Assembly: GCF_030028105.1 (NCBI RefSeq)
Contig: NC_092375.1
Span: 54,287,130 to 54,351,129, forward strand
From: Mobula birostris
Taxonomy: Eukaryota
Reading direction: 5' to 3'
DNA: 64,000 bases
Shown: in pieces, positions 14,925 to 63,700 of the stretch
Position numbering within the stretch: the first letter of the stretch is position 1
Layout: each line of letters starts with the position of its first letter
Position numbers and translations under genes: made by a program
Notes under the pieces: generated by a model
Told to the model about the DNA's origin: nothing
Databases searched by the model: none
The model's input: only the letters and a program-made list of their open reading frames with translations

Positions 14925-15089
14925 CTGTGAAACAGAAATAAAATAGAATATTGTAAAGAAAACTAATCAACCATTTCACAAATATTTATTCCCAAAACAC
15001 TCAAAGGTATGCTAATTATACTGGACGTACATATGTCTTGGATGAGAATGCATGTGTCTGATAGCATATTTACAGAAGAGGTAAAAATT

Positions 15090-33419: not shown

Positions 33420-36005
33420 AGACCTTAAGTCTATAAGACCATAAGATACAGGAGCAGAATTAGGCCATTTGGCCCATTGAGTCCACCCTTCTATCCCATC
33501 ATGGCTGACGCATTCCTCCTCTCAGCCCCATTCTTCTTTCTTCTGGATGCATCCTTCATGCTCTAAGCTATCAAGAATCTATCAACCTCTGTCTTAAATA
33601 TAGACATTTAAGACTTGACCTCTACAGCTGCCCATGGCAATAAATTCTACAGATTCACCACTATTTGGCTAAATAATTTCCTATTCATCTCTGTTCTAAA
33701 AGGGCACTCCTCTATTCTGAGGCTGTGTCCTTTGGTCCTAGACTCTCCTACCATAGTAAACATCCTCTCCACATCCACTCTATCAAGGCCTTTCACCATT
33801 CAAAAGGTTTCAATTAGGTCACCCCTTATTCTTCTGAATTCTAGTGAATACAGGCCCAAACCTACCAAACACTCTTCATAAGACACAGCATACCATTTCT
33901 AAGATAAGGGGACTAAAACTGCTCACAATACTCCAAGTGAGGCCTCACCAGTACTTTATAAACCCTGAACATTCCATTCCTGCTTTTATATTCTAGTCCT
34001 CTTCAAATGAAATCTAACTCCTTCCTCACCACAGACTCATCCGGCAAATTAAACTTTAGGGAATCCTGCACAAAGACTCCAAAGTCCCCTTGCACCTCAG
34101 AGTTTTGAATTTTCTCTCCTATTAGAAAATAGTCTACCCTTTTATTTCTTCTACCAAAGTGCATGACTGTGCACTTCCTGACACTGTATTTCATTGCCCC
34201 TTCTCCTAATCTGTCTAAATCCTTCTGTAGCCTCTTTACTTCTTCAAAACTACCTACTCCACCACCTATCTTCATATTGTCTGCAAACTTTGCAACAAAG
34301 TCATCAATTCCATTATCCAAGTCATTGATATATAACATAAAAAGAAACAGTCCCAACACAGACCCCTCTGGAACACCACTAGTCACAAGCAGCCAACCAG
34401 AAGAGGCTCCCTTTATTCCCACTCTTTGTTTCCAGCCAATCAACCACTGCTTTAGCCATGCTGGAATCTTTCCTGTAATGCCATTGGCTCTTAACTTGTT
34501 AAGCAGCCTCATGTATGACAGCTTGTCAAAAGCCTTCAGAAAATCGAAGTACACAACAAACATCAACTGATTCTCCTTTGTCTATTCTGCTTGTTATTTC
34601 TTTAAATAATTCTAACATATTTGTCAGGCAAGGTTTTCCCTTTTGGAAATCATCCCGACTATGGCCTATTTTATCATGTGCTACCAAGTACCCCAAAACC
34701 ACATTCTTAACAATTGACTCCAACATCTTCCCAATCACTGAGGTCAGACCAATTGGCCTATAATGTCTTTTCTTCTGCCCCTCTCTCTTGTTGAAGAGTG
34801 GAATGACATTACAATTTTTCAATCTTCTGGAACCATTCCAGAATCTAGTGATTCCTGAAAGATTATTACTAACGCCTCCACAATTTCTTCAGCCACCTCT
34901 TCCTGAACATTGGGGTGTACACCATCTGGTCCAAGTGACTTATCTCCTTCAGACTTTTCAGTTTCCCAAGAACTTTCTCCCTAGTAATGGCAACTTCACA
35001 CACTTCCGACTCCTGACACTCTTGAACTTCCACCATACTGCTAGTGTCTTCCAAAGTGAAGACTGATACCCCGCTGAGGGTAACAGACACCAACAGAATC
35101 AAGAAACTCATTCGTAAGGCCAGTGATGTTGTGGGGATGGAACTGGACTCTCTCACGGTGGTGTCTGAAAAGAGGATGCTGTCTAAGTTGCATGCCATCT
35201 TGGACAATGTCTCCCATCCACTACATAATGTACTGGGTGGGCACAGGAGTACATTCAGCCAGAGACTCATTCCACCGTGATGTAACACAGAGTGTCATAG
35301 GAAGTCATTTCTGCCTGTGGCTATCAAACTTTACAACTGCTCCCTTGAATGGTCAGACACCCTGAGCCAATAGACTGGTCCTGGATTTATTTCATAATTT
35401 ACTGGCATAATTTACATATTACTATTTAACTATTTTTGGTTTTATTACTATTTATTATTTATGGTGCAACTGTAACGAAAACCAATTTCCCCCAGGATCA
35501 ATAAAGTATGACTATGACTAAATACTTATTCAGTTCATCAGCCATTTCCTTGTCCCCCATTATTACCTCTCCAGCATTGTTTTTCAGTGCCTGATGTCCA
35601 CTCTTGCCCCTCTTTTACACTTAATGTATCTGAAGGTATTTTTGGTATCCTCTTTAATATTACTGGCTAGATTTCTTTCATATTCCATCTTTTCCTTCTT
35701 AATGACTTTAAATAGTTACTTTCTGTTGGTTGTTAAAAACTTCCTAATCCTCTTCCCACTAATTTTTGCTCTATTACATGCCTTCTCTTTGGCTTTTATG
35801 TTGTCTTTGACATCTTTTGTTAGCCATAGTCATGTCATCTTGCCTTTAGATAATTTCTTCCTCTTTGGGATGTATATATCCTGTACCTTACAAATTGCTT
35901 TCAGAAATTCCAGCCATTGTTGCTCTGCTGTCATCCCTGCCACTGTTCTTTTCCAATCAATTTTGGACAACTCCTCTCTCATGCCTCTGTAATTCTCTTT
36001 ACTCC
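33420..36005 (-). mobile_element. Decayed CR1 ORF2 (RT) with 3' end at 33420, split by a Rex insertion
   Basis: ORFs 34003-34566 (VVYFDFLKAFDK..GVPEGSVLG..KFADNMK) and 34526-34822 (HYRPIGLTS..KGKPCLTN). Confidence 0.9.
35070..35520 (+). mobile_element. Rex1/Babar-type 5'-truncated LINE nested in CR1
   Basis: RIKKLIRKASDVVG..RMLSKLHAILDNVSHPLH..FSQRLI; tail ATCAATAAAGTATGACTATGACTA. Confidence 0.85.
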
Positions 36006-36269: not shown

Positions 36270-37740
36270 AAAGGCATATGACGAGATGGGCCAAAACCAG
36301 CATGGTTCCTGAAAGGAAAATCCTGACCTGACTAACCTACTGCAATTTTTTTGAGGAAATTACAAGCAGGGTAGACAAAGGAGTAGGTGTGATGTACTTA
36401 GATTTTCAGAAGGCCTTTGACAAGTGCGGCACATGAGGCTGCTTAGCAAGATAAGATTCCATGGAATTACAGAGAGTTACTAGCATGGGTGGAACATTTC
36501 CTGATCAGCAGAAAACAGAATGGGAATAAAGGGAGCCTATTCTGGCTGGCTGCCAGTTACCAGTGGATTTCCACAGGGGTCGGTGTTGGGACCGCTGCTT
36601 TTTACGATGTATGTCAATGATTTGGACTATGGGATGAATGGATTTGTGGCTAAGTTTGCTGATGATATAAAGATAGGTGGAAGAGCGAGTAGTGTTGAGG
36701 AAACAGAGAGCCTGCAGAGGACTTAGATAGTTTAGGGGAATGAGAAAAGAAGTGGCAAAGGAAATACAATGTTGGAAAGTGTATGGTCATGCACTTTGGT
36801 AGAAGAAATAAACGGGCAGACTACTATTTAGATGGAGAGAGAATTCAAAATGCAGAGATGCAAAGGGACTTGGGAGTCCTTGTGCAAGATACCCTAAAGA
36901 CTAACCTCCAAGTTGAGTTGGTGGTGAAGGAGGCAAATGCAATGTTGGCATTCATTTCTAGAGGTATAGAATATAAGAGCAGGGGTGTGATGTTGAGGCT
37001 CTACAAGGCACTCGAGAGACCACATTTGGAGTATTGTGTGTGGTTTTGGTCTCCTTATTTTAGAAAGGATGTACTGACGTTGGAGAGGGTTCAGAGAAGA
37101 TTCACGAGAATGATTCCAGGAATGAGAGGGTTACCGTATGAGGAACGTCTGGCAGCTCTTGGGCTGTATTCCCTGGAGTTCAGGAGAATGAGGAGGGATC
37201 TCATAGGAACATCCCAAATGTTAAAAGGCCTGAACAGATAAGATATTTCCTATGTAGGGGAGTCCAGGACAAGAGGGCACGACTTTAGGATTGAAGGATG
37301 TCCATTTAGAACCGAGATGCAAAGAAATTACTTTAGTCAGAAGGTGATAAATCTAGAGCAGGGGTCCCCTATCTTTTTTGCACTGCGGACCGGTTTAATA
37401 TTGACAATATTCTTGCGGAATGGCTGACGGGGGAGGGGGGTGTTCCAGTTCAACAGTGCGTGACAGGGAATGAGGAAAGTTGCAGCTGACTCATATCGTT
37501 TCATATTGCCAAATCATATTGTTTTCTTGCGGCCTGGTAGCACATCTTTGTGGCCCAGTACCGGTCTGCGGCCTGGTGGTTGGGGATCACTGGCTCTAGA
37601 GCACAGTACCATTAAAGAGGACTACAAAGAACTGGCTGGGAGAGGTGGGGGAGCAAATTTGGGATTGCTTTGAGTCAGTGGACTAGACCACTTTCAAGGG
37701 TTTATCAATAGACCTAAATTAACATGTAACAATCAACACT
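36270..37740 (+). mobile_element. CR1 LINE RT 3' half
   Basis: ORFs 36520-36726 (FPQGSVLGPLLF..KFADDIK) and 36783-37241. Confidence 0.9.
37359..37592 (-). mobile_element. hAT (Charlie/Buster) MITE, short derivative of the 39987-41216 family
   Basis: CAGGGGTCCCC...GGGGATCACTG ends; flanks ATCTAGAG and CTCTAGAG (NTCTAGAN target, 7/8 match, 1 extra base); both ends match the 39987-41216 element inverted. Confidence 0.88.
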
Positions 37741-39729: not shown

Positions 39730-39890
39730 CAAACACGAGGATATCTGCAGATGCTGGAATTTCAAGCAACACACATAAAAGTTGCTGGTTAACACAGCAG
39801 GCCAGGCAGCATCTCTAGGAAGAGGTACAATTGATGTCTCGGCCCGAAACATCAACTGTACCTCTTCCTAGAGATGCTGACTGGCATGTG
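39730..39890. mobile_element. Fold-back Penelope terminal fragment
   Basis: AGCATCTCTAGGAAGAGGTACAATTGATG-loop-CATCAACTGTACCTCTTCCTAGAGATGCT inverted repeat. Confidence 0.8.
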
Positions 39891-41216: not shown

Positions 41217-42808
41217 CTTTAAATGCATATAATTTTTGCAAATGATTTACAAGCAAATCACTATTAATATATTAATTCACATGAACACTCATAGAGTCCT
41301 CATCCAATTACATTAAGGGATTTTCCTTCCACAAATATCCATCCATATTTTCACTCCACTGAAACTCTCACTTGGTGTGCTTGGTTCATATAACAATGAT
41401 CATCCTCAATCTGCCACCAGCATTTCAATAATCTTCTGGAAATTAGACCGAGTTTTCACAATTCTAAAGACACAAATCACTGTAAGTGCTGGAATCTGAA
41501 GCAAAGAACATGGGGCTGAAGAACTGATTGGGTCAGGCAGCACCTGTGGAGTAAAATGAACAATTGACATTTATCTGGACCAGTAGAAGGGTATCAACCC
41601 TGAGACATCCACTATTTATTTCCATCCACAGAGGCTGCCTGACCCATTCAGTTCCTGCAGCAGTGTGGAGACAAAAGAGACTTCAGATGCTGGAATATAG
41701 AGCAGCAATCTGCTGGTTTTGACCAGAAATTTTCCTTTCCTCACACAGATGTTGTTTGGCCCAGAGTTCCTCTAACAGGTTCTTCATTGTTTCACAATTC
41801 TATATTATTTTTGTGTGGTCAGCCCATAGCAGCAGACAGACTAATAACAAATGAGCTGCAAGTACAGTTATAATTTTTGACTTGTTCTAAGGTAGTATTT
41901 CTGAGCATGGAAGTCGTGAGGGAGACTTTTGTGAACAACCTTCTCATGTTCTTTTAACCCAATAACTGTCTGGTTTCTTCCTCTTTTGAGTGGGAAATAT
42001 AAAGTTCAGTCATCAGATAGGAAATTCTTATAAATTATTCATTTACAGAACGTAGGTGTGACTGACAAGATCAGTATTTATTGCTTATTCTTGACTGCCT
42101 GTCAGAAGTTAATGCTGAGCCGCCTTCTGAATCATATGGATCTTCTGATGGAAATACTTTTATTGCTTTGAGGGTGGGGAGTTCCATGATTTAGGTTCCC
42201 CCAAATGGCCACAAATATCACCATCAACCCATTGCAGATAGGAAAACATATTTGTGCTAATTATGATTTCAGTGCCAATGCAGGACTAACAGCACCCCAG
42301 CGCCAAATTCTGATTTCACAAGTGGTTAACAGTAGGAGTCTGAAGTGATTATGACTGACATTTTGCAAATGACTCAAGGCATAACACAGTTTTTAGATGT
42401 TCTTCTGAAGCGTTGATGTAAAAAGTGAGGAGGAGGAGATATATCTTTTTAATAGAGTAGGAGGTGATGGAATTTGGCCTCCATGTGAGCATATACAGTA
42501 ACCATTTCTGCATACTGCGTCTTGTTAACGCTACCTATAGTAAACTTGGTTTTGGAGTGGAGATGGTGTGGTTTGGACTATGTACCCATTTGCTCTGCTC
42601 ATTAGCCCTACTTCAGCAGGAAACTTGTCAAATGTGAGAACAATTGAGTTAAGCGTTGGGATAATGGTGTGGCTTTGCTTGTCACCACTCTCTGCACTGA
42701 GAATGAGCTGGAAGCTTTCTTCATGTCTTATAATGAGAAAAGCTTGTGAAACTCATGATCAATGTTAAGCAAGGTAATGCACTTGCGCAACATTTCGTAA
42801 CTAGGCCA

Positions 42809-44340
42809 TGTAGATCAGAGTGAGCCTGTGGTGTAACGATAGTTTAATAGCAATAAACGATAAATGTAATACTTCCTTCAAAATATATCTCAAAAATGTT
42901 TACCAATGTCAAGAAAGCATAAGACTCACTGATATTGCTGATCAAGGGCAAGTAAAGAGCGGCTGGAGATGGATATCTTTCTACACCACGTGCTTCAAGT
43001 CAACATCAGAATTAACCCACGCAAAATATAATGTTAAAAAACAGATTACCTACAGTAAGTGATGATCATACAAAATGAACAGTGTTTCTAGAGGCCAAAT
43101 AAACACTCCACCAAGACATCCATGGGATGTCAGGCTAACTACTGAAACTAAAAGGCAGATGGTTATTTCATTATGTCTTTGCCAAAAGAAGGACAGTCTC
43201 CAAGACTGGACTTGAAAATAGTCTTACCGCACAGTCTTTAACCATTCTTGCTTCGAAAATGTCACCTTTGTTGACATACTTGCTCGTGGCAGTGTCTGAT
43301 GAGCAGACCGGTGACACAGTGCTCACCCAGAATGACGCTTGGGTGAGGTAACTCTGAAGTAAATTGTGCTCTTTTAATACATCCTCCAACTCATAGTAAT
43401 TCTTCAGAGTCAACAGGGTTCACTAAGGTAACCTTGGATTGGAAGAAGTTCCCATTTTGTGATGCACTGTACTTCCTCTGCATAAATTTGTCTTTGAACA
43501 TCAAGCAGGATTCTAACCTTTTCCCAATTCCATTGCTCAACACTGAGATGTTGATTACACATTTGCCAACCACTTCAAAGGCTGTCTTTGGCTACTTCTA
43601 CAATATTCACTGTCATACAGAAACTACTCCCATAGGGTATGAAGTGACATTGGCACCCATTGTCCGGGACGTTAGTCTTAAATACGCTGACAGTAGGCTG
43701 ATGAGCATCATCAAGGCAGAATTCGTCCACTATGACCCAACCTGGTCCAATATTTGTGCATAAGGTGCATACTGAACTGATGCACTGTCCACATACCTTA
43801 TATGTATGGATGGTGTCTTGGTCAAGCAACAGAGTCCATTTGTCACTGGAATGTCTGTGCTGTACTTTTCAGCTCAAACAACATGCACACAAACTCAGAT
43901 AGGCCAAACAGGGTGCTAGCAGCAGTTTTGAGAATATCCCCTGTGCACAGAGGCACTTGATGGTAGCTCCTGGCTAAGACCACTTTAGAAAAAATTATCT
44001 TTCTGGCTAAAGGTGCTGAAAAGTGCTGGTGGGACTGGGTAATGACTGGGGGTGGTGGTCTCATTAAGGTGGTGGTGATTTCTACATGGACTGAAACCAA
44101 GAATGGGCTTAGAGACCATGTGGTTAGGTGATGACCAAGGGCTTTCCAACCTGCGTAAAATGCCAAACACTTTCATGTTAGCAAACTCAGCCTTTGTGCT
44201 GGCCAGCTTTTCTGAGTCCAGCCTACGCACAAAGGGATGGACCAGTAGGCCAGTTGTGGAAATGTGATGCTTACTGTCAGGCTTTGTTACTGTAGTGGAA
44301 AATGGGGACCTGGTGAGGTTTGGGAATTTTCCCAGCAGGT
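42809..44340 (-). mobile_element. Gypsy/BEL-Pao chimeric LTR element, copy A (3' LTR ~42809-43105)
   Basis: Gypsy RT N-half (SPWSSPNHMV..FSKV..YHQVP..LFELKSTAQTFQ) joined at ~43810 to BEL/Pao pol (VQRQIYAEEV..VGGCI..HCVTGLLIRHCHEQVCQQ, C-terminus PVLETVLLL*), then a PPT-like GGTGGAG and TGT...TACA. Confidence 0.75.
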
Positions 44341-45019
44341 GTGACAACTTGAGATGTAATGTCTCATGTCTCTAAAATGGTCACAAATACAAAACCTCTG
44401 TGGTGTTCTGGGAGGACTTTCTCTTTGGACAGTTGATAGGGGAGTTCAGGTCTGCTGAAGTCTAGATCTTCAGTAGGAATTCCAGAGTACTCAGGTCAAG
44501 GCTTCAGTCAGTGTTGAGTACTTTGAAGAGTTCCTTCTAGTTGATGATGTACATTGATTATTCAGTCTGTGGTTTCCCATCTACAAAGTTTGTATTTTCT
44601 GTTAGGATCAGTGAAAAAGTTTTATGGGAACAAAATGTAGGAGTTGTTGGAAGTAATAGATTTTGCAAAAGAGGTTTAATGTGAGAACACACCAATAAAG
44701 AGACAGCAAAGAACTGAAAAGTGTGAGCATTGGAGATTGAAGAGTACAGCACAATACTGCCATTCAGCCCACAATATTGTGCCATTCTTTTAAATTACTC
44801 CTTGATCAATCAAGCCCTTCCATTTTCTACATCCAAAAACCCTTCATTTTTTTCTTTTATCCATCTGCCTATCTAGCAGTCATATAAATGTCCCTAATGT
44901 ATCTGCCTTTTCCATCACCCCCTGCATTGCATTGCAAGCACTTACTGCTCCCTGTGTAAAAAAAACCTACCCCTGATAGTGTGGTAAGTGTATTGTTTAA
45001 AAAAAAGATTCTAAAATGT

Positions 45020-45115
45020 ATGTGTCATGTGCTTGTGTGTGTGTGTGTGCCCTGAATGTGCATGTGTGTGAATGTGATTTGTGTGTGTGAATGTGATCTG
45101 TGTGTGTGTGTGAAT
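45020..45115. repeat. Imperfect (TG)n microsatellite
   Basis: Direct reading. Confidence 0.9.
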
Positions 45116-45291
45116 GTTAGCATCAGTTGCCTGTACCAGACCTCTGAAGGACTCCAGTATTGGGCATGATTGTAAATTATGGATGAGAGATCAATAAGCA
45201 TATTAATAATTATATTATACGGTGGAATAGACTGTGTGAGTGTCTGCAAACGTGTATTAGAGAACAGAAACTGTGAGAAGACTGGAGGGTG

Positions 45292-46938
45292 TGTTACGTA
45301 CCCTGTAATGGGTTTAAGAACCAGCAGAAATGGAACACACCTGGAGTCTGGTTTTGCTTTTAACTAATGCTATTTTTATTAGTAACTACACAATACAGTA
45401 ATATAAAACCAGATAAATCAAACAGGTTGGCAAAAATTATGCATATATAGGTGTGTAAATATAAAACCCAAACTTCTTCAAGCTTAGGTGGTAAGGGATA
45501 CAGTCTTATGATGGAATGAAAACAAAGTCAGTTCTGTTCGTGTTATTGAGTTGAATAGAATTGAGGAGAGAGAGAGAGATGTTTTGTTGTTCACGTGAGC
45601 TGATGCCGTCGATTCTTCCCATTGTCTTCCGGAACTTGCAAGTTAGCCAAACTTTACCAACTTAAGAGCGCCGTCTTCAAGTGATAATCTACCAACCCAG
45701 GCAAGGGTTAGACACACTGGTAGACTCTACGGGGTCACTCTTTCATGCAGTAATAATCACAGATCGATTCCTCATAATCGATCCTCAGTCCCACACTCAT
45801 GGGCAAAGTGTAGTGGTAACTTCACAACACCTTAGTCCATCTGCATGTCCTTTTCTTCGGTGTCCTCCAAAATCCTCTAAAGTCACCGAATGTGACAACA
45901 GGAAGGACTGTCTTCTGTGGTAACGCTATCGACCTAGGCAAGGGTTGGACACACTGATAACTTCCCACCGGTCACCCCTTTTCCACACTGCGAGAGCCAC
46001 TGATCGATTCCCCCAATCGATCCTCCAAAACCCACCCTTCTGTGTGCACACAAAGCTGATGCAGTGTCCGAATTCATGTGTGTCTCACTCCACACACGAA
46101 GCATCACAATGGTGATCTTCAACAAATATCCTTTCAACACAAGTGGTACCACACCTGAATTCAGCTACGGGTCATCCCAAAGTGGTGGCCATAGGATACT
46201 CTAACAGAATCCACGTGTGGATTATCACCAACAGTAGCCTATCACAAAGGGGACCCTCTTCAAGGGAATCACCAAACACACAACTGTGATAGCCACTTAT
46301 CCAGTTCCACGACATACGAAATAACTCCAACAGTGATTTTCCACAGGGGTGCCTTTCTTCAGTGAACTACCACACCCAAACAAGGGTAACACACACGTGG
46401 TATTCACAAAGGTCTTTCTCTCACCGGAGAACCCACTCCTGCGGATTAATGAAGTGACAATCACACATTTGTGTTCGAATGGAACTCAAACTCACCCTTT
46501 TGAGCTACTTAGGAGAGAGTCCAAACAGTCACCTCTTTGTCACTAGGTTTCTTCTGTTTCAAACCTTCCTCTCCCGTCTACTCTTCCTGCAAACTTGTTC
46601 TAGTTGTAGAAACTTGTGAGTATCATTTATCAATACTCAGGATCGATCTAAACTCACCCCTTCTGGGCTACTGGAAGTTTACAGCAGGACCTCATTCACT
46701 GGTGTCTTTCATTGATTGAATCCATCTTGACTCTGAGCATGTGTTTCTGTGTGTCTGTAACTGTCCTTGTAAAAAGTAAACTCGCTGCAGAGAAGCCATA
46801 ACATCGATTGTCCATCAAATACCTCCACCTCCCTCTCTCTCTGTAGGAACTCACAAGCGGTGTCCAAAAGTCAGTCTCATTCTCCCGATGTTTAAAGTGA
46901 CAGTCCACAGAAAATATGAACCCTAGGGGTACATAACA
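45292..46938 (-). repeat. 3' LTR of Gmr1-type element
   Basis: Terminal inverted repeats; PPT adjacent at 46939-46950. Confidence 0.9.
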
Positions 46939-48641
46939 TCTACCCCCAAGAAATCAAAATTTTGATCAAAGAACAAAACTTTTTTAATTGTACATTACAG
47001 AATATAAAGCAATACATACGTGATTATCATGTAGCACATTACAAAAGCACATACAAATACTAGTTTCTATTTCACTTTTAAACTTAACATTCAGACAGTC
47101 AATCTACCATGATATTGTCTTTATTTTTCACATGCTTTAGTACAAAAAAGTCAAATTCCTGCAAAATCATATTGTGCTATATTCAAAATGGCATTTGATC
47201 ACCCATCGTCCCTTTTCCACTTAGAAACAGAACAATTAGTCATCAGGTGACCAGATTGCTTATCAGCTCAGATAACTGCCTGAACTTTACTCTACACCAG
47301 TGCCAACTCATCAACGTTTTCCAAACCAAGCACATTTGCTGAACTTATTGAAAACTGCACTTATAAAAAGTTCCAAATAAATCATTAATTCTATCTCTGA
47401 GACCTTCAGTTCCACAGGTTTCCATAGTAACACCCACAGATGGTCCCTCCTGATCAAAACAACACTTCAGGTTTTGTCTCTCCACACCACAAACTTGGTA
47501 ACAACCCCACGTTGTTTATTCCTAAATTCTAAAACAAACATACTAGCACACAACTTGTTACCAAACCACTGTCCCTTCAGTAAGGTCAATGGTCCTGAAA
47601 CCAATCCAGACTTTAAATTTACCTTATTCAAAGGTTCAGAAACAACACTTTTCTCAATATCTTCAATAACATTTACCTCACCAATTTTCATCTCATCACC
47701 AACTAACACAAGTGACTGAGAATCCTCAATTTCCACTGGTACCAAGGTTAACCCCTTATTCACTGAACCAAGTCCATCTGACACAAAAGGACTGCATTCC
47801 TTTTCAACTGAGTCAGACACCTCAGATCTAAACCGAGTTTCAACACAAGGTTCAGTACCCTGTGGACCCACAGGTACTTCAACAACCTGAACACAGGCGA
47901 TCGGAACAGGTCTCTTCTAGGCCTTCATCACTAGTCGCAGTTTCAAATTCCAGGTTACCCTGATCCTCCCAGCTGCTCTCTGGGAAACTCTCATCCGGAA
48001 TAAACTCAACCTTGTGGGTTAAAACAACATCGTCCGCTAGTCTAGCAAGGTAGCGGCATCCTTTTCATCTGAGTATGCCTTTACATCATCTGGAACACAC
48101 TTCTTAAATTCTTCAATCAAAACCAGCTCTATCAAGCTGTAAAAATCATCTGGGTCCAACACTGGACCTCCCAGCTGCCGACATCTCCCTCTCGAACTCT
48201 CTGTTTTCTTGCCTCTTCAGCCTCGAGCTGTTTTACTCATAACTCAAACTCGAGCTGTTGCTGTCTCCGCTTCTCCTCAGCCTCAATCTCTACCTTAAGT
48301 CTATCTAACTTAATTTGTTCCAGTTGTATCTGGATCTCCTCTTCACCTACAGGAAACCCCTTCAACACCTCCTCATGAAATTGCTCCACAGAGGTATAGT
48401 GTTCAGCTATCTTCCTTTGAATTTCCGCCTTTCTCATACCCTTCTTGACTTCCGTAAGTTTCAGTTCCTCAGCAATTTCCTGCAACTCATCTTTTCTAGC
48501 TTTCTTCAAAGCCACAGGGTCTGGTGAGGCCAGAATTTTCCTAACATCCATTTCTGCTGTTTTTCCACACAAGCAAACCAAAAGAGATTTTCCCCACTCA
48601 AATTGATTAAGCCCCCAACAATTTTAAAATGGCTCCAAACA

Positions 48642-48907
48642 CAAACACGAGGAATTTTGCAGATGCTGGAAATTCAAACAACACACATCAAAGTTGCTGG
48701 TGAACGCAGCAGTCCAGGCAGCATCTCTAGGAGGAGGTACAGTTGATGTTTCAGGCCGAGGCCCTTCGTCAGGACTGAGGCACAGTCGACGTTTCAGGCC
48801 GAGACCCTTTGTCAGGACAGATGAAGGGTCTCGGCCTGAAACGTCGACTGTACCACTTCCCAGAGATGCTGCCTGGCCTGCTGCGTTCACCAGCAACTTC
48901 GATGTGT
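48642..48907. mobile_element. 266-bp fold-back Penelope pLTR-only insertion with 13-bp TSD
   Basis: TSD ATGGCTCCAAACA at 48629-48641 and 48908-48920; inverted arms; three hammerhead-like cores. Confidence 0.9.
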
Positions 48908-48964
48908 ATGGCTCCAAACAATTTGTTCATATCCCGGATGCAGGCCCCAATTTTGTTAGAGACC

Positions 48965-49026
48965 TGGTTAAAGGAACCTGTTTGGTAAACAGGAGATCCT
49001 GAGTTTGAATCTCAGTGGTGCCTCCA
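48965..49026 (+). other. Extended primer-binding site: ~62-nt copy of the 3' part of tRNA-Thr including CCA
   Basis: TGGTTAAAGGAACCTGTTTGGTAAACAGGAGATCCTGAGTTTGAATCTCAGTGGTGCCTCCA aligns to vertebrate tRNA-Thr(AGT) as recalled (TGGTTAAAGCGCCTGTCTAGTAAACAGGAGATCCTGGGTTCGAATCCCAGCGGTGCCTCCA); 4 nt from the 5' LTR. Confidence 0.85.
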
Positions 49027-49030
49027 ATTT

Positions 49031-49301
49031 TGTTATGTACCCCGTAATGGGTTGAAGAACCAGCAGAAATGGAACACACCTGGTGTCTGGTTTTGCTTTT
49101 AAGTAATGTTATTTTTATTAGTAACCACACAATACAGTAATATAAAACCAGATAAATCAAACAGGTTAGCAAAGTTTATGCATATATAGGTGTGTAAATA
49201 TAAAACCCAAACTTCTTCAAGCTTAGGTGGTAAGGGATGCAGTGCTACGATGGAATGTAAATTAAGTCAGATCATTTTGTGTTATTGAGTTGAGTAGAAT
49301 T

Positions 49302-49339
<38 letters not shown>

Positions 49340-50665
49340 GTTTTGCTGTCCACATAAGCCATGCAATCGATTCTCCCATTGTCCTCCGAAACTTCCAAGT
49401 TAGCCAAACTTGACCAACTTAAGATCGCCGTCTTCAAGTGATAGTCTACCAACCCAGGCACACTGGTAGACTCCACAGGGTCGCTCTTTCACGCACCAAT
49501 AATCACAGATCGATCCCTCGTAATCGATCCTCAGTCCCACAGTCATGGGCACCTGAAAGTGTAGTGGTAACTTCACAACACCTTAGTGCGTCTGCATGTC
49601 CTTTTCTTCGGTGTCCTCCGAAATCCTTTAAAGTCACCGAATGTGACAACAAAAAGGAGACCGTCTTCTGTGGTAAAGCTATCGACACAGGCAAGGGTTG
49701 GACACACTGAGAACTTGCGAGAGCCACTGATTGATTAGCCCGATCGATCTTCCAAAACCCACCTTTCTGTGTGCACACAAAGCTGATGCAGTGTCCGAAT
49801 TCATGTGTGTCTCACTCCACACACGAAGCATCACAATGGTGATCTTCAACGAATATCCTTTCAACACAAGTGGTACCACACCCGAATTCAGCTACGGGAC
49901 ATCCCAAAGTGGTGGCCACAGGATACTCTAACAGAATCCACGTGTGGATTATCACCAACAGTAGCCTATCACAAGGGGACCCTCTTCAAGGGAATCACCA
50001 AACACACAACTGTGATAGCCACTTATCCAGTTCCACGACATACGAAATAACTCCAACAGTGATTTGCCACAGGGGTGCCTTCCTTCAGTGAACTACCACA
50101 CCCAAACAAGGGTAACACACACGTGGTATTCACAAAGGTCTTTCCCTCACCGGAGAACCCACTCCTGCAGATTAACGAAGTGACAATCACACCTTTGTGT
50201 TCGAATGGAACTCAAACTCACCCTTTTCAGCTACTTAGGAGAGAGTCCAAACAGTCACCTTTTTGTCACTAGGTTTCTTCTGTTTCAAACCTTCCTCTTT
50301 CCTCTACTCTTCCTGCAAACTTGTTCTAGTTGCAGAAAACTTGTGAGAGTCATTTATCAATATTCAGGATCGATCTAAACTCACCCCTTCTGGGCTACTA
50401 AAAGTTTACACCAGGACTTCATTCACTGGTGTCTTTCATTGATTGAATCCATCTTGACTCTGAGCATGTGTTTCTCTGTGTCTGTAACTGTCCTTGTAAA
50501 AAGTAAACTCGCTGCAGAGAAGCCATAGCATCGATTGTCCATCAAATACCTCCACCTCTCTCTCTCTCTGTAGGAACTCACAAGCAGTGTCCAAAAGTCA
50601 GTCTCATTCTCCCGATGTTTAAAGTGACAGTCCACAGAAAATATGAACCCTAGGGGTACATAACA
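49031..50665 (-). repeat. 5' LTR of Gmr1-type element
   Basis: Perfect 13-bp terminal inverted repeat TGTTATGTACCCC/GGGGTACATAACA; PBS adjacent. Confidence 0.9.
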
Positions 50666-52352
50666 GGTGGTCTGTGTTTACGTTAAATGCAAAAACAGTC
50701 AGGTAAATCCTGTAAAAAGCAGAGAAAATGAACAAAAGTAAAAGAAGAGAAAAACACGGAAAGAACAGGCAAAGCATCAAACATCTCAGTGATTGAAAAG
50801 GAACAATAAGCACCATAGTCTGAGGATGAACTAGATGCTGTATCCCTGACTTTCCCAGGCCCTGTTTGAACAAGGCTCATGCCAAGCAAGGCTTCTTGAG
50901 TATTCAGTGAGGTTGGCTTCAGCTGAAGCCGTGCCACAGGTAGTAGTTCCCAATACAACTACTGAAGGTGGAGGGGTGCAGAGGGAATGAATGAAATATT
51001 GATCTAAGTGTACCTCAAACTGATCCAGTGGGAGCTCGAAGAAATTGTTTCCCTTGGACTGTAGACTGGCATACAGAATCAGTGTTGGACAGGAGACAAT
51101 GATGTTAGTGAATATTGTGAATGCATGCATAAATGTTTTCAAAAGCATCCAGATTAACTCTACAAGTGGGGATGCCCATCCTAATAAATGTTAGGATAAA
51201 TAAGTTGCAGCCTAGATTATAGGAAAACATGTACTGTTACTTGTGTGTTACGAGAAAGTTAAGTAAAATTCCCAGTGCTTTACAATATTGCCAAAAACAA
51301 ATACAACATCAAGGGATTAAAGCTGTTAAGGGGAATGGGGCCAATACTTGTGTGAAACATCCCGAGCTGCTCCACTAAAAACTCTGGGCAATATTATACT
51401 CAACTGCCCTTGCAGTTCATTTGTACCAAGCTCAGCAGGCAGTTAAACACGTTCTCAAAAACCACCCGAGCTAGAAGCTTTCTACAGTTCTTTTAATCTG
51501 AAAAACATCTGACACTGCATAAAGATAAGTAAAATACATATTAGATTCAACATAGAATCATCTAACACCTGAATATACCAATACTATCAATTATTTTCAC
51601 GATCAATTTTAAACAAGTGAATACACTATATTGTGTAGATCAGAGTGAGCCTGTGGCGCAACAATAGCTTCATAGCAATAAATGATAAATGTAATACTTC
51701 TTTCAAAATATGTCTTCTAAATGTTTACCAATGTTAAGAAAGCTTATGACTCACAGATATTGATGTTTCAAGGGCAAATGAAGAGCGGGTGGAGATGGCT
51801 ATCTTTCTGCACCACGTTCTTCAAGCCAATAACTGAATTAACCTTTGCAAAAAATAATAAAGTAAAAAAAAGATTAGATTAGATTAGAATATGAGGATAC
51901 AGTCTTCTTTTATTGTCATTTAGTAATGCATGCATTAGGAAATGATACAATGTTCCTCCAGAATGATATCACAGAAACACAAGACAAATCAGAAATGATG
52001 TTCATACAAAATGAACAATGCTTCTAGAAACCAAAACACACAGTCCTGGCATCCATGGGATGTCAGGTTAACTACTGAAACTAAAAGGCGTATAGTCATT
52101 TCATTAAGTCTTTGGCAAAAGAAGGACTTGAAAACAGTCTTACCACACAGGACAGTCCTTAACAATTCTTGCTTCGAAAATGTCGCCCTTGATGACACAC
52201 TTGCTCGTGGCAGTGTCTGATGAGCAGACCGGTGACACAGTGCTCACCCAGAAGGACACTTGGTGAGGTAACTCTGAAGTGAATTGTGCTCTCCTAATAC
52301 ATCCTCCAACTCATAGTAATTCTTCAGAGTCAACAGGGTTCATTAAGGTAAT

Positions 52353-55289
52353 CACGCGGAATTCTGCAGATGCTGGAAATTCAAGCAACACACATCAAAG
52401 TTGCTGGTGAACGCAGCAGGCCAGGCAGCATCTCTAGGAAGAGGTACAGTCGACGTTTCAGACCGAGACCCTTCGTCAGGACTAACTGAAAGAAGAGCTA
52501 CTAAGAGATTTGAAAGTGGGAGGTGGAGGGGGAGATCCAAAATGATAGGAGAAGACAGGATGGAGCCAAGAGCTGGACAGGTGATTGGCAAAAGGGATAT
52601 GAGAGGATCATGGGACAGGAGGCCCAGGGAGAAGGAAAAGGGGGAGGGGGGAAAAACCCAGAGGATGGGTAAGGGGTATAGTCTGAGGGACAGAGGGAGA
52701 AAAAGGAGAGTGAGGGAAAGAATGTGTGTATAAAAATAAATAACGGATGGGGTACGAGGGGGAGGTGGGGTATTAGTGGAAGTTAGAGAAGTCAATGTTC
52801 ATGCCATCAGGTTGGAGGCTACCCAGACGAAATATAAGGTGTTGTTCCTCCAACCTGAGTGTGGCTTCATCTTTACAGTAGAGGAGGCTGTGGATAGACA
52901 TGTCAGAATGGGAATGGGATGCGGAATTAAAATGTGTGGCCACTGGGAGATCCTGCTTTCTCTGGCAGACAGAGCGTAGGTGTTCAGCAAAACAATCTCC
53001 CAGTCTGCGTCGGGTCTTGCCAATATATAGAAGACCACATCGGGAGCACCGGACGTGGTATATCACCCCAGCCGACTTACAGGTGAAGTGTCGCCTCACC
53101 TGGAAGGACTGTCTGGGGCCCTGAATGGTGATGAGGGAGGAAGTGTAGCACTTGTTCCGTTTACAAGGATAAGTGCCAGGAGGGAGACCAGTGGGGAGGG
53201 ATGGGGGGGACGAATGGACAAGGGAGTCGCGTAGGGAGCGATCCCTGTGGAAAGCTGAGGGGAGGGAGGGAAAGATGTGGTGGGATCCCGTTGGAGGTGG
53301 CGGAAGTTACGGGATTTAATATGTTGGACCTGAAGGCTGGTGGGGTGGTAGGTGAGGACCTGGGAACCCTTTTCCTAGTGGGGTGGCTGGAATGAATAGC
53401 CTCATCCTGACAGCAGATGTGGCAGAGATGGAGGAATTGCGAGAAGGGGATGGCATTTTTGCAAGAGACAGGGTGAGAAGAGGAATAGTCCAGATAGCTG
53501 TGAGAGTCAGTAGGCTTATAGTAGACATCGGTAGATAAGCTGTCTCCAGAGATAGAGACAGAAAGATCTAGAAAGGGGAGGGAGGTGTCAGAAATGGACC
53601 AGGTAAACTTGAGGGCAGGGTGAAAGTTGGAGGCAAAGTTAATGAAGTCAACGAGCTGAGCATGCATGCAGGAAGCAGCGCCAATGCAGTCGTCGATGTA
53701 GCGAAGGAAAAGTGGGGGACAGATACCAGAATAGGCACGGAACGTAGATTGTTCCACAAAACCAACAAAAAGACAGGCATAGCTAGGACCCATGCAGATG
53801 CCCATAGCTACACCTTTAGTTTGGAGGAAGTGGGAGGAGCCAAAGGAGAAATTATTAAGAGTAAGGACTAATTCCGCTAGACGGAGCAGAGTGGTGGTAG
53901 AGGGGAACTGTTTAGGTCTGGAATCCAAAAAGCAGCGGAGAGCTTTGAGACCTTCCTGATGGGGGATGGAAGTATATAGGGACTGGACATCCATGGTGAA
54001 AGTAAAGCGGTGGGGGCCAGGGAACTTAAAATCATCGAAAAGTTTAAGAGTGTGAGAAGTGTCACGAACATAGGTAGGAAGGGATTGAACAAGGGGGGAT
54101 AAAACCGTGTCGAGGTATGCCAAAACGAGCCGTATCTGCTCTCAGGATGAGGCTTTTCATTCCAGGACGAGGGAGATGTCCTCCTTTTTTAAAGAAAGGG
54201 GCTTCCCTTCCTCCACCATCAACTCTGCTCTCAAATACATCTCCCCCATTTCATGCACATCTGCTCTCACTCCATCCTCCCGCCACCCCACTAGGAATAG
54301 AGTTCCCTTGGTCCTCACCTACCACCCCACCAGCCTCTGGGTCCAACATATTATTCTCCGTAACTTCCGCCTCCTCCAACGGAATCCCACCACTAAGCAC
54401 ATCTTTCCCTCCCCCCCTCTCTTTCCGCAGGGATCGCTCCCTACGCGACTCCCTTGTCCATTCGTTCCCCCCATCCCTCTCCACTGATCTCCCTCCTGGC
54501 ACTTATCCTTGTAAGCGGAACAAGTGCTACACTTCCTCCCTCACCACCATTCAGGGCCCCAGACAGTCCTTCCAGGTGAGGCAACACTTCACCTGTGAGT
54601 CGGCTGGGGTGATATACTGTGTCCGGTGCTCCCGATGTGGCCTTCTATATATTGGCGAGACCCGACGCAGACTGGGAGATCGTTTTGCTGAACACCTATG
54701 CTCTGTCCGCCAGAGAAAGCAGGATCTCCCAGTGGCCACACATTTTAATTCCACATCCCATTCCCATTCTGACATGTCTATCCACGGCCTCCTCTGCTGT
54801 AAAGATGAAGCCACACTCAGGTTGGAGGAACAACACCTTATATTCCGTCTGGGTAGCCTCCAACCTGATGGCATGAACATTGACTTCTCTAACTTCCGCT
54901 AATGCCCCACCTCCCCCTCTATTTGTCTATTTATATACACACATTCTTTCTCTCACTCTCCTTTTTCTCCCTCTGTCCCTCTGGCTGTACCCCTTACCCA
55001 TCCTCTGAGTTCCCCCCCCCTCCCACTTTTCCTTCTCCCTGGGCCTCCTGTCCCTGATCCTCTCATATCCCTTTTGCCAATCAACTGTCCAGCTCTTGGC
55101 TCCATCCCTCCCCCTCCTGTCTTCTCCTATCATTTTGGATCTCCCCCTCCCCCTCCCACTTTCAAATCTCTTACATAGCTCTTCCTTCAGTTAGTCCTGA
55201 CGAAGGGTCTCGGTCTGGAACGTTGACTGTACCTCTTCCTCGAGATGCTGCCTGGCCTGCTGCGTTCACCAGCAACTTTGATGTGTGTT
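52353..55289. mobile_element. Head-to-head Penelope-like element with 15-bp TSD
   Basis: TSD GTTCATTAAGGTAAT (52338-52352, 55290-55304). Minus arm ~52353-54130 has RT (QTKGVAMG, LRYIDD; 53161-54123), GIY-YIG (52773-53099) and pLTR. Plus arm ~54131-55289 has the RT C-terminus, GIY-YIG (GVIYCVRCSRCGLLYIGETRRRLGDRFAEH) and pLTR. Confidence 0.95.
52448..52483 (-). ncRNA. Minimal type I hammerhead ribozyme motif in Penelope pLTR
   Basis: Minus strand AGTC-CTGACGA-AGGGTCTCGGTCT-GAAAC-GTC-GACT: intact CUGANGA and GAAA core, GUC triplet, stem I AGTC/GACT, palindromic ACGT stem III. Confidence 0.7.
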
Positions 55290-57549
55290 GTTCATTAAGG
55301 TAATGTTAGATTGGGAGAAGTTCCTGTTTTGTGATGCACTGTACTTTCTCTGCATAAGCTTGTCTTTTGAACAGCAAACAGGATTGTAACCTATTCCCGA
55401 TTCAGTTTCTCTGTGCTGAGAGGTTGCTTACAAATGTGCCAACCATCCAAAGGCTGACTTTGGCTAATCCTACAATATTCACTGTCGTATAGAAACTACT
55501 CCCATAGGGTCCGAAGTGACTTTTGCACCCATTCTCCAGGACATTAGTCTTAAATACGCTGACAGTACGCTGATGAGCACAATCAAGGGAGACCGCATTC
55601 TCTATGACCCAACCAGGTCCAATATTTGTGCGTAAGGTGCATAGTGAACTAATGCACTGTCCACGTACCTTATGTCCCTCCCAAGCAACAGAGTCATTAG
55701 TCGCTGGAATGTCTGTGCTGAATTTTTCAGCTCAAGTAGCATGCACAGAAACTCAAGTAGGCCAAACAGGGTTCTAACAGCAATTTTGAGAATACGTATC
55801 CCCAGTGCCCACAGGCACTTGATGGTAGCTCCTGAGTAAGACCACTTTAGAAAAAAATACCTTTCTGGCGAAGCGTGCTGAAAAGTGTTGGTGGGACTGG
55901 GTAATGACTGGGGGTGGTGGTGATTGCCGCATGGACAGCAACCAAGATTGGGCTTCGGGACCATGTGAAGGGGTGAAGCCCAAGGGCTTTTCATCCTGCG
56001 TATAATGCCAAGCATTTCCATGTTAACAAACTCAGCCTTCATGCTGGCCAGCTTTTCTGAGTCCAGCCTATGCACATGGACCAGTCAGTCAGCTGTGGAA
56101 ATGTAGTGCTCAACCCCAGGCTATGTAACTCTGGTACAAAATGGGGACTTGCTGAGGTTTGAGAATATGCCCAGCAGATGGGTAGTCACTTATGGTGGTC
56201 CATGCACTAGACAGAATTGTTGTGAGAAACTTACTGGGTCTATAGGGTAATGACCCAGAGCTCGTTGTGTCCACAATTTGGCAGTTCCTAAGATCTACTC
56301 ACCGTGTTTTGGTGCACAGGAAATATGCATAGAGCAGAGATCCAGCAACTTTAGCAAGATAAAGTTCATATGCAGCATTGACCACTGAAGCAAAGCATCA
56401 CGCGTTATGTCCCATAAGTCCGGATCCAGCTGCCGTTAGCGGCCTCCAGTGAGGGTCCTTTGTTCTCTACCTTTTAATCAATGGTCAATACTGGCAGCAA
56501 AGTTACTTGAGTGCATGTGTCACACAGGAAGCCTCACCTGAAAAGGTGTCCTTAATGAACAGCAGACTATCCTGGCAGCTATCCATGGAGTTCTCAGACC
56601 TCTGATGTCCCAATGCGCCTAGCACTGTCAAAGCTGTCACTTATTGGCATTCATGCTGAAGCGAGCATGTTAAAAACATAGACCTGGTATTGTCTGGTTT
56701 GGAGCCGTGGGCATGAGTCTGCTGGAAGGTCTGCTGACAGGGCTTATTGAGACAGGTAAAGAAGGAGGGACAATGCACCTCTGTCTGCCTAAGAAAGTCC
56801 ATTAGAGCAAGTTCCCCATCATCCTTCACGACTATTCAAATTTGATCAGGCAAAAAAGCTCTTTAAAAATAAAATATGGATGGTGATTGCCTAGTAGAAG
56901 TAGCACATAGTCTGTTAGTTCTGAAGGTCTAACATCATCCAGGCTGGGCAAATTGATCCACTGTTTGCTGTGCTCGGACTTAGACAGTTCAAAAGTCTGT
57001 AATGGGTGAGTTTTCAGAGTGACTTATTTATCAGTTGCAGGTGGGTCTTCTAGTAGACTCACCACTCTGGCTGCAGAGGAACTACTCAGCAATGCTATGG
57101 CATAGTAAGATCTGGTATGTCTGTGGGGATTTCTCAGTGCAAACTGGGCTTCTGTCTGTGCAAACATGTGGATGTATGCTGCTCCCAAAATTCCAGCAGC
57201 TTCAAACTGACTGCATTGGTTGACATATCATTGAGTAACTCCGGAATTATCCAAGTGTCAGGGTCACCAATGTAGGATTTTGTGAATAAAACGTGAATAA
57301 TGAAGGCCCACTTACCATATGCCTTCTTAATCACCTTATCAACTTGTGCGACAACTTTATGGGATCTATGGACATGGAATCCAAGGTCGTTCTCTTGTGT
57401 CACACTGCTAAGGATCCTGCCATTAACCATGTACTCTACCTTCAGGTTTGACCTTCCAAAGTGTATCACTTCAAACAACAAGCAACAGAACTCCCCAACT
57501 TCCAGAGGGCCAAATTACGCACAGCTCTTCCATATGAATGAGCATTTGG

Positions 57550-60730: not shown

Positions 60731-63700
60731 TGTCATATAACTTAATTCATAATAATAATTATTTACAAGAATAAACCACGCAATGCCTTTTAGATTAGAT
60801 TAGATTAGATTCAACTTTATTGTCATTGTGCCGAGTACAGATAAAAAGCCAATGAAATACAGTTAGCATCTGACCAGAAATGCAAAGAATAGTGTTATTT
60901 ACAAAATTCACTGCGAATAAAGAAAGTGCTACAGCACACAAATATAGAAGTACTGAGATGATACAATACGGATGCAATACTGCTTAGTGCTGTGATGAGA
61001 GGTTTTCATTCTTACATTAATGAATGGTAGTGGTAGTTGATAGGGTTATTCCCATTCCACTCAGTTAGCCGCTCCCACATGGGTGGAGTTCACATCATGT
61101 ACAAGTAGGGATCATTAAAGTTCAGTTAAATATACTGCATGCTGGCGTCCTGGTATGCTCTGCACTGTCCCTCAATATCGAATAGAACATGGTGTCAGAA
61201 GTGGTTGATCGTCAATGCTGCACACCAAATGAGATCTCCATCATGAAAGGGATTACAGTAGTACTGTTCTTGTTCCCATATATCAATGAAAAACATCCAG
61301 AGACTATCAACCTGAACTGTTGATGCTAGTTTGCTAAGTTGTATACACCAAGAGGCTTGAGCTGTAATAATCTGTGGCACACAAGCCTGGTGAATTACAC
61401 AGATGCAGCAGAGAAGTCAGTCAAATTCTCAGAGAGAGAAAAGAAGCTTTTCTAGTCCAAGTAAATAAAATAATAAATAAATAAACAGGAAAATGGAGCA
61501 AATACCTGCAGGTACCTGCTTATCTACTTCCCTAATAACCCCCCCCCCCCAAGATATTTGATTTTTCTAAACCAGGGGACATTGAGAGATGGCTCAGACA
61601 CTTTTAGAGATTTAGAGTTGCAAGCAATCTCACTCAGGCTTCAGAAGAGCATCAAGTAAGCACACTGATATACTGCATTGGTGACAAAGCAGATGATATC
61701 ATGGGTGGATTGGGACTGATGGATGTTCAGAAAAAAAAGTACAAAACAGTGCAGGACAAATTCAAAGAATATTCCACAGGAAAGCAAAATGTGATTATAT
61801 GAGAGGGCAAAGTTCAACTCCAGAAAACAGGAGTGAGATGGAAGTTAAAATGACTTCATCACAGCATTTTATGTTCTGTCAGACAACTCTGCAAATGAAA
61901 ATCTGAGATATGAGTTCATTAGAGACAGGATTATTGTCAGGCTACTAGACACCAAATTGTCAGAGAGACTTCAGTTGCAGGCAAATCTCACACTAGAGAA
62001 AGTCATGACTATGGTCAGGCGGAGTGAGAATGTTTATCAGCAACAGGCAGAACACAGGCAGAAAATTATGCCAAGGCAAAGATAGAAGCTGTACAAAAAG
62101 AATGGTACAAACAAATTGCAGTCAGAAAGGCTGCAGAAAAAGGTGACAGGAGAATACAGCTCAAACAAAACAGACAAGCAAAACAAAGAGCAGCAGAAAA
62201 TGTCCAACTGCAGGAGATGTGGCAACTCTTCATTCCATGTCAAAGAGCTCTGTCCAGCAAAAGAAGAGAAATGCCACCAATGCAATAGAGATGGTCATTA
62301 TAAAAGCCAGTGTCACTCCAAAACAGTTCTTCAGGAGGTCATAGAAGGCCATAATTCAGATGAACAAAGAGCTTTCATTGGGGTTTTAGATTCAAATAGA
62401 CAGGGCTGGTGTACTATAGTTCAGTTGCAAAATGAGGCTGTGTCGTTCAAAATAAACACTGAAGCAGATGTCACAGCCGTCCCCACATGTCAGTTCATAA
62501 AACTGGCGAGAAAAAACAGGCTTTACGCTAAACTTAACAAAGAAAATGCTCATGAGGCCAGGGAAACATAAGCTCAGTGTGAAAAGAATGTTCACTACTT
62601 CCATCTGTAAAATGATTAGCAGTTAAAAGAGGATATCTATGTTGTTCAGAATCTCTTCTCACCACTACTGGGACAACATGCCATCAAGAAGCTAAACCTC
62701 ATTACGAGGTTGGATTGGTTAAATAATGTTCAAGGCAGAACAAGTACCAGGAGTTATTCACAAGCCTGCGATTACTGAAAGAAGAGTACCTTATCCAACT
62801 GGGGCCAGGAGTGACGCCCCACTCTCTTACCACAGCAAAGCATATAACCGTCCCATTGATGAACAAAGTTAAAGCTGAACCTGAGAGATTGGAGGCACTC
62901 GATACCATAACTAGAGTGAATGGACCTACTGAGTAGTGTGCACGCATTGTCCCTGTTCAAAAGCCAGATGAAACAATTCTGCATTATTCACTGCAAGATT
63001 GAATAATGCCGTGAGGTGGGAAAAAATTATTCTGCCCTCTGAGCACACATTGGGTATGCTGGGTGGGGAAAAGTTCTTCAACAAACTAGATGCAAACTCA
63101 GGGGTTCTGTCAGATCTGTTTAGCTTCTGAGTCACAGTAGCCCATAACCTTTATCACACCATATGGGCTCTATGCCTTCAAGAGATTCCCTTTTGACATC
63201 TTATCAGCCCTTGAACCCTTTCAAAGTTTGGTTCATCCTCATCTGGAGGGACTGGAAGGAGTCGTCTGCCACATGGACGATATATTCTTCTTCAGAGGCA
63301 CAAGTGAGGAACATGACAAAAGAGTGGAAGCTGCCTTGGAGAAACTGAAACAGGCCAGAAACAGCCTGAACAAATAGAAATGTGAAAGTTCAAAGTTGAA
63401 GTTCTGAGGGCACAAACTGTCCTCAGATGGGGTCCATCCAGATTCAGACAAACTGGCAGGAGTTCAGAACAAGGAACAGCCTACAAATGTATTAGACAAT
63501 AGACAATAGGTGCAGGAGCAGGCCATTCGGCCCTTCGAGCCAGCACCGCCATTCGCTGTGATCATGGCTGATCACCCACAATCAGTATCCAGTTCCTGCC
63601 TTATCCCCATAACCTTTGATTCCGCTATCTTTAAGAGCTCTATCCATCTCTTTTTTGAAAGCATCTAGAGACTTGCCCTCCACAGACTTCTGGGGCAGAG

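Follow-up and report, generated by a model that had tools for sequence, protein, structure and literature searches.

A composite of Ty3/Gypsy and BEL/Pao pol sequences in two related copies within a 64-kb stretch of Mobula birostris DNA

Template switching is known to put pieces of host mRNA into long terminal repeat (LTR) retrotransposons (LTR-mediated retroposition; Tan et al. 2016, PMC5131818), and complex insertions with template-switch chimeric LTR retroelements were described in Triticeae (Sabot and Schulman 2007, PMC1950507). The present analysis was applied to a 64-kb stretch of Mobula birostris DNA (contig NC_092375.1, positions 54,287,130 to 54,351,129; hereafter the window, with coordinates counted from its first letter), which was repeat-rich vertebrate DNA with 0 N runs. 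The window harbored two copies of a composite LTR-retroelement relic, copy A (44341→42705) and copy B (57270→51468), both placed on the minus strand by their coding remnants, and in each of them the first half of a Ty3/Gypsy reverse transcriptase (RT) was followed in the same orientation by a fragment of BEL/Pao pol. This composite is real and arose once. On balance, we lean to a history in which a single ancestral composite originated by template switching, while the pair of copies A and B more likely reflects a local duplication.

Self-comparison of the window aligned the two copies in three collinear matches: 42809-43048 with 51634-51876 (85%), 43057-43431 with 51993-52351 (84%), and 43418-44341 with 55290-56180 (81%). 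The likeness of A to B varied from 81 to 92% by segment, and these matches bore out the same architecture in two copies that an earlier note, made from the letters of this DNA, had described. The Gypsy content of B comprised a primer-binding site (PBS)-like sequence, gag, protease, and the first RT half, while that of A was the RT half alone.

The Ty3/Gypsy part was identified with a 160-amino acid (aa) stop-free piece of B (55605-56084, minus strand), which found 1638 relatives in a search against 1.84 billion representatives. The long relatives were complete Ty3/Gypsy pols with DUF7041 gag, RVT_1, RT_RNaseH, Integrase_H2C2, and rve; nine of them were scanned, and RVT_1 and rve were present in all nine, RT_RNaseH and Integrase_H2C2 in eight, the ninth (P0009) having neither of the latter two. 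A profile built from 15 Gypsy pols matched A at 44356-44030 (E = 8e-31) and 44028-43822 (E = 6e-22) and B at 56183-55671 (E = 2e-33; end also given as 55668), and tblastn with the Gypsy pols P0009 and P0018 covered the RT of B from 56177 to 55605 and that of A from 44359 to 43726 or 43828. The profile match ended at the same profile position (332-335) in both copies, just before the YxDD motif, and this endpoint was the same for stop-free pieces and for read-through with X at stops; the cut just before YxDD that had been read by eye was thereby placed correctly to within about 30 bp. The N-terminal RT half, running from fingers and palm to ...TFQxQMDSV, occupied 43822-44356 in A, and its counterpart in B, with homology again ending just before the YxDD position, occupied 55668-56183 (both minus strand). 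No profile match to Gypsy RNase H or integrase was found in any frame 3' of A 43822 or B 55668.

Upstream of the RT, copy B retained a frameshifted gag of the DUF7041 type (56853-57226, minus strand), confirming what had been claimed for it: tblastn aligned residues 1-15 of P0009 at 87% and residues 22-126 at 47% over 57226→56853, and the Pfam match to DUF7041 was weak on B (57027-57227) and strong in the homologues. A Gypsy protease region followed at 56378-56545 (minus strand), where residues 233-288 of P0009 aligned with 55% identity (E = 9e-12, 56545→56378). P0009 itself (938 aa), the nearest Gypsy relative of B, had no RNase H and no zinc finger, its RT being joined to the integrase core, which suggests that internal deletions just after the RT recur in this Gypsy lineage. 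A BEL-like motif occurred in none of the 220 retrieved Gypsy-type proteins, and a word search with the RT piece returned distant RT fragments alone, none of which exceeded 46% identity across most of the query, and no family members.

The second part was traced with the HEQVxHQGR motif of copy B, which located 120 loci in metagenome contigs. Fifteen of the 120 were similar to the A frame well past the motif (Smith-Waterman scores of 76-106 versus at most 46 for the others), and the long open reading frames (ORFs) of the loci L052, L103, and L085 carried Peptidase_A17 (Pao peptidase), DUF5641, DUF1759, and rve, which identifies these loci as BEL/Pao pols. When the BEL/Pao proteins of the 15 loci were compared with all 64 kb by tblastn, matches were confined to A 43256-43501 (plus 43730) and to B 52177-52308, on the minus strand in each case. 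A profile built from nine of the 15 loci matched A at 43453→43262 (E = 1.2e-11) and 43604→43446 (E = 1e-3) and B at 52293→52174 (E = 7e-11), with weak collinear matches in B at 55468-55358 and 55371-55318, beyond a nested Penelope-like insert (see below). The reference loci had been chosen by a 9-residue motif of copy B, which inflates raw scores, and the motif was therefore masked for a control score, at which the A match still reached E = 1.1e-6. Furthermore, a motif-free stretch of L103 (about residues 1501-1599) aligned with A 43712→43440 in a single frame (E = 2e-7), and L103 matched B 55444-55310 at E = 0.002. As a specificity control, intact Gypsy integrases scored at most 6.8 bits on the BEL/Pao profile, and none of them matched its linker positions 322-420.

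Judged by its sequence, this fragment of about 450 bp is BEL/Pao-specific and comprises the linker that follows RNase H together with the His-His half of the zinc finger of the integrase. The fragment occupied 43262-43712 in A (minus strand; BEL/Pao profile and L103), where it contained stops and one frameshift near 43450; in B, the linker and His pair read HCHEQVCHQGRHF, and the end of the linker with the His pair (…LLGEHCVTGLLIRHCHEQVCHQGRHF) lay at 52174-52337 (minus strand; BEL/Pao profile, translation, and tblastn with the 15 loci). The earlier identification of the BEL part as the RNase H-integrase linker with the integrase His pair thus stood up to the profile, the masked-motif score, and the L103 alignment; the internal deletion leading to a terminal PV.E.VLLL* did not, and that DNA proved to be the C half of the zinc finger read in a second frame. 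A first reading of the frame upstream of 43450 was likewise replaced by the frame with BEL/Pao profile support.

BEL/Pao homology upstream of 43712 or downstream of 43262 was nowhere above shuffles, and comparison with the BEL references gave no signal of a BEL/Pao RT, protease, integrase core, or DUF5641 tail in A or B. A candidate DUF5641 tail, or any BEL homology past the His pair, did not exceed shuffles save for one gapped, unconvincing alignment in B. Searches with single pieces were equally empty: for stop-free pieces from the second half, Pfam had no relevant match; ESM Atlas with the 42-aa zinc-finger piece gave no usable match; phmmer against PDB turned up a designed repeat protein and nothing else; and neither a 66-aa piece nor the motif pattern had a match in IMG/VR.

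Gypsy homology thus ended at A 43822 and B 55668, and BEL/Pao homology started at A 43712; the junction zone of about 110 bp between them (A 43713-43821, minus strand), which may hold a 'YVDS' remnant in a shifted frame, had no significant match to Gypsy or BEL/Pao. Its counterpart in B (55304-55667, minus strand), composed of the junction zone and the beginning of the BEL/Pao linker as far as the site where the Penelope-like element inserted, was about 90% identical to A 43560-43830 and had weak BEL matches. Across the junction zone, A and B were about 90% identical with one 13-nt indel, and this common junction indicates that both descend from a single joining event. The Gypsy and BEL/Pao profiles each matched their own part and neither matched that of the other, placing the two halves in different superfamilies and bearing out the cross-superfamily composition. 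A continuation of the Gypsy RT past YxDD, read as 'YVDS...' and 'NPAxC...HH...P.LP', was tried and set aside as unproven, the profile stopping at 43822 even when read through stops; shuffle tests for this continuation gave one marginal match in B (1/500), with A at background in the same place. When the 109-aa ORF of B that spans the junction served as query in a protein word search, there was no match.

The ends of the element were compared next to the claims that similarity stopped exactly at an LTR terminus TGTAGATCAGAG and that the outside flanks were unrelated, neither of which held. With blastn at 7-base words, A 42753-42783 matched B 51597-51627 (81%), and A 42705-42753 matched B 51468-51516 (78%, E = 1e-5), the latter being the only non-self match of that stretch in the window; similarity therefore ran beyond TGTAGATCAGAG for about 105 bp more in A and 165 bp in B, and homology of the flanks on closer comparison was found to that extent. 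The 3' region of A (42809-43261, minus strand), which had been read as the rest of the integrase, a polypurine tract (PPT), and an LTR, carried no BEL or Gypsy signal, and it was followed by a stretch beyond the supposed terminus (42705-42808, minus strand) that was still homologous to B with indels and repeated about 10x. The 3' region of B spanned 51468-52173 (minus strand), in which 51634 corresponded to the supposed terminus and 51468-51633 was still homologous to A 42705-42808. No second LTR copy of the 3' region was present in the window, nor was there a direct repeat upstream of the PBS, and the proposed PPT and LTR at the 3' end were not upheld.

On the 5' side of B, homology to a long interspersed nuclear element (LINE) stopped at 57299 in DNA and 57275 in protein, leaving at most 28 nt between the LINE fragment (57299-57514) and the PBS-like TGGTGACCCTGACAC of B (57256-57270, minus strand). 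The sequence TGTAGGATTTTG, previously taken for the 5' LTR end of B, sat at 57271-57282 within this gap and partly read as LINE protein sequence; the 28 nt before the PBS were also aligned to the 3' region, with scores below the shuffle mean. A gap of at most 28 nt, part of it LINE and with no match to the 3' region, means that a 5' LTR is not demonstrable in B, and TGTAGGATTTTG was dismissed as its end. The breakpoint at which B lost its Gypsy 5' LTR appears to lie no more than a few bases away from the PBS. The adjoining LINE RT fragment (57275-57514) was 3'-truncated and on the same strand, with kin at 8128-8577, 24705-25148, 34006-34581, and 36744-37238; a continuation of the LINE past the 3' end of B, as expected of an insertion into the LINE, was sought and found absent. 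The PBS-like sequence is one that we take to correspond to tRNA-Trp, ARAGORN and Rfam being without a match for it; the same two programs found no tRNA or Rfam family in the region.

Copies elsewhere were sought in public contigs of two rays. Eight public runs from two studies contained A, four of organism A (about 90% of words) and four of organism B (about 40%), and the contigs of two runs per organism were aligned to 42400-44800 at a likeness of at least 80%; contig depth in such an alignment does not equal copy number. Both flanks, 42400-42642 and 44344-44667, were single copy, and depth rose at about 42650 and fell at 44344. Compared to single copy, depth was about 10x at 42643-42804, 110x at 42805-42966, about 60x at 43048-43371, 22-53x at 43372-43533, 13-18x at 43615-43776 (both species), 8x at 43777-43857 (the junction bin), and 46x-300x over the RT; the junction bin, also rich in indels, dipped between neighbours at 18x and 46x. 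Contigs of organism B spanned A together with both flanks at about 98.5% identity, which makes A older than the split of the two species. Eighteen to 21 contigs continued past the truncation point of A, and their consensus matched the upstream sequence of B, which identifies A as a truncated member; A itself was cut in mid-pol against single-copy DNA at 44341/44344. Among the contigs listed, the longest that bridged the junction showed differences as expected of A, B, or their orthologues, while a contig over 43216-43500 was a true third copy of the BEL part, in which A and B were about 92% identical and the third copy and A about 83%. As for copies of the junction elsewhere, every part of A is multi-copy, but the listed bridging contigs are A, B, and orthologues alone.

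The same contigs bore on the supposed terminus. The highest-repeat piece of the 3' region was 42809-42966 of A (about 110x single copy), and in some of the other copies 42942 came directly after 42723 or 42751, separated from it by just 13 or 39 different letters, so that the stretch around the supposed terminus is absent from those copies. The segment 42752-42966 may be a separate small high-copy repeat within the 3' region of the element.

Two further elements set the order of events. The extra 2.9 kb present in B and not in A (52352-55289), overlooked in the earlier note, was read as a nested Penelope-like element with an RT (53164-54141, minus strand) and two inverted GIY-YIG remnants (52776-53306, minus strand; 54078-54899, plus strand). 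Its inverted arms of about 1 kb (52386-53391 and 54278-55290) were 91.5% identical, and it was flanked by a 14-bp target duplication GTTCATTAAGGTAA (52338-52351 and 55290-55303) that A held once (43418-43431) as an empty site; the empty site in A and the duplication in B indicate that the insert entered B after A and B had separated. The Pfam matches lay just under the cut-offs (RVT_1: E = 7e-5, 23.1 bits, cut-off 29.6; GIY-YIG: E = 2e-4, 21.8 bits, cut-off 22.6), with the RT and GIY-YIG in the right order. One count of A/B mismatches was made with both sides of this insertion site joined. Short stretches at 48643-48913, 39730-39888, and 32610-32783 shared 85-93% identity with the outermost 100-170 bp of the Penelope-like arms, and two of the three formed small inverted-repeat units (foldback-like, or like miniature inverted-repeat transposable elements), one of them inside element C.

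Element C (45292-50665, minus strand) was an LTR element lying between A and B and forming no part of the chimera. It had 1.65-kb LTRs (45292-46938 and 49031-50665; TGTTA...TAACA; 90.7% identical) and the target duplication GGTG, contained an internal coiled-coil gag-like ORF (48240-48623, minus strand), and is younger than the A/B split. Without element C, A and B are separated by about 1.7-1.9 kb, depending on the choice of B end, and have the same orientation.

In the history that we lean to, the 5' part of the ancestor would have been Ty3/Gypsy sequence, from the PBS through gag and protease into the RT as far as the YxDD position, while its RNase H and integrase would have been replaced by about 450 bp derived from a BEL/Pao pol transcript, followed by about 450-600 bp of 3' sequence. 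The exchange most likely arose when reverse transcriptase switched templates in a particle that had packaged the RNAs of both a Gypsy and a BEL/Pao element; the BEL/Pao piece would then be an internal capture in a Gypsy element rather than a BEL 3' half with a BEL LTR, and the composite, having no working enzyme, would have been mobile only with help from other elements. Both later insertions, that of the Penelope-like element in B and that of element C between the copies, followed the separation of A and B.

We consider it somewhat more probable that the A/B pair stems from a local duplication of about 1.7 kb at the DNA level than that it stems from two independent retrotranspositions. Local duplication is favored by four observations: (i) A and B lie close together in the same orientation; (ii) their homology runs past the supposed terminus; (iii) A is truncated within pol, where it borders single-copy DNA; and (iv) the A-B identity in the BEL part (about 92%) exceeds that between the third copy and A (about 83%). 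Two separate insertions of a mobile unit, as first proposed, are left unsupported by the flank homology, the false terminus, the lack of a 5' LTR and target duplication, the truncation of A, and the proximity of the copies.

Several points weigh against this combined history. The breakpoint is placed to within about 110 bp and not to the base; the junction of about 110 bp and the 3' region match neither superfamily, and a nested insertion with deletions would give the same picture. An LTR pair, PPT, and target duplication are not demonstrable for A or B. In addition, the 8x depth of the junction bin and the 13-18x depth at 43615-43776 fit a chimeric family of several copies, not A and B alone, and A is no simple tandem duplicate, its upstream neighbour being unrelated to that of B.

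The depth values are also what gives some standing to the best-surviving alternative, in which the Gypsy/BEL recombinant was a non-autonomous LTR family that moved as a unit and A and B were independent insertions; we regard this as possible but distinctly the less probable course. Counting contigs at least 80% alike, A is multi-copy over its whole length (about 42650-44343) in two rays, with sharp drops to single copy outside, the junction bin stands at about 8x and the segment between the two homologies at 13-18x, and the 18-21 other contigs run past the truncation of A as B does. Yet the junction-bridging contigs listed are only A, B, and orthologues, and the depth falls at the junction bin (18x and 46x beside it) as if most copies stopped short of it. 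Moreover, it is very unlikely that chance would bring two members of a low-copy family into the same orientation at a distance of about 1.7-1.9 kb, the A/B flanks are not unrelated, there is neither a 5' LTR nor a target duplication, and a 5' truncation such as that of A is atypical for integrase-mediated insertion.

An origin at the DNA level, in which one element inserted in the other, the Gypsy 3' half and the bulk of the BEL/Pao element were later deleted, and the relic was then copied locally, is rated as improbable. Nested insertions abound in the window (the Penelope-like element in B, element C, and the LINE abutting the PBS), the junction and 3' region matching neither superfamily would suit such an origin, and large deletions are certain here given that B has no 5' LTR. 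Nevertheless, several independent deletions would be needed, and they would have had to leave the same orientation and the pol order in which the RT precedes the post-RNase H linker with the integrase; BEL/Pao sequence is absent upstream of the Gypsy part, the two parts are not separated by a Gypsy 3' LTR, and the parts between the homologies are multi-copy. Finally, that there is no chimera at all and the BEL/Pao likeness arose by chance in decayed Gypsy or non-coding DNA, as the matchless Pfam, ESM Atlas, PDB, and IMG/VR searches with single pieces and the inflated raw scores of references picked by a 9-residue B motif might suggest, was rejected as highly improbable, given the motif-masked score of A (E = 1e-6) with a collinear second stretch, the motif-free match to L103 (E = 2e-7), the flanking similarity confined to the BEL/Pao-like loci among the 120 (76-106 versus at most 46), and the failure of intact Gypsy pols to match that part of the profile.

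Whichever way they separated, A and B are an old, dead relic with no sign of host function. It is a more doubtful proposition that the cross-superfamily recombinant became a trans-mobilised non-autonomous family, reaching about ten or more ray loci before the two species split; if true, this would mean that RNAs of different LTR-retrotransposon superfamilies are co-packaged and recombined in vertebrates. If the hybrid did spread in this way, particles of one superfamily can package and copy the RNA of another, and the known capture of host mRNA would be extended to exchange between superfamilies, as one route to new architectures. Composites of this kind mislead repeat classifiers and consensus builders, their copies being filed under two superfamilies or merged into a false chimeric consensus.

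Two other features of the window lay outside the composite. Open stretches at 11914-12342 and 14500-14985 (minus strand) were 67% similar and had the look of immunoglobulin V-type exons (…FSCTT…W.K…LSG……EDEGCYQCLF); a host gene may have given rise to them, as tandem exons or as paralogues. At 62086-62568 (plus strand), an ORF resembling gag and containing two CCHC zinc knuckles was followed by a possible protease start; it represented another LTR retroelement, which may extend past the right edge of the window.

The composite was finally set against the known systems from which its parts derive. Compared to Ty3/Gypsy elements (Metaviridae) with DUF7041-type gag, as represented by P0009 and P0018, the gag, protease, and RT fingers and palm were collinear with 35-55% identity, and the PBS-like sequence of B lay 27 nt ahead of the gag start; A and B lacked the rest of the RT, the RNase H, and the integrase, and their LTRs were not demonstrable. 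Compared to BEL/Pao (Belpaoviridae) pols such as L052, L103, and L085, about 150 residues matched, including ...VGGxIKRAQ...HPxxIL..H.VTxLLIRHxHEQVxHQGR, whereas the BEL/Pao gag, protease, RT, integrase core, and DUF5641 tail were missing from A and B, which held the fragment alone. The insert in B shared with Penelope-like elements a candidate RT followed by a candidate GIY-YIG nuclease, a partial inverted duplication, and a long (14 bp) target duplication, with Pfam scores just under curated cut-offs, but it was a passenger and not a part of the chimera. With the template-switch chimeric LTR retroelements (PMC5131818, PMC1950507) the composite would share (i) the replacement of part of pol by a foreign RNA-derived fragment and (ii) a non-coding product movable in trans only, and it differs from them in that the captured piece came from another LTR superfamily, BEL/Pao, and not from a host mRNA.

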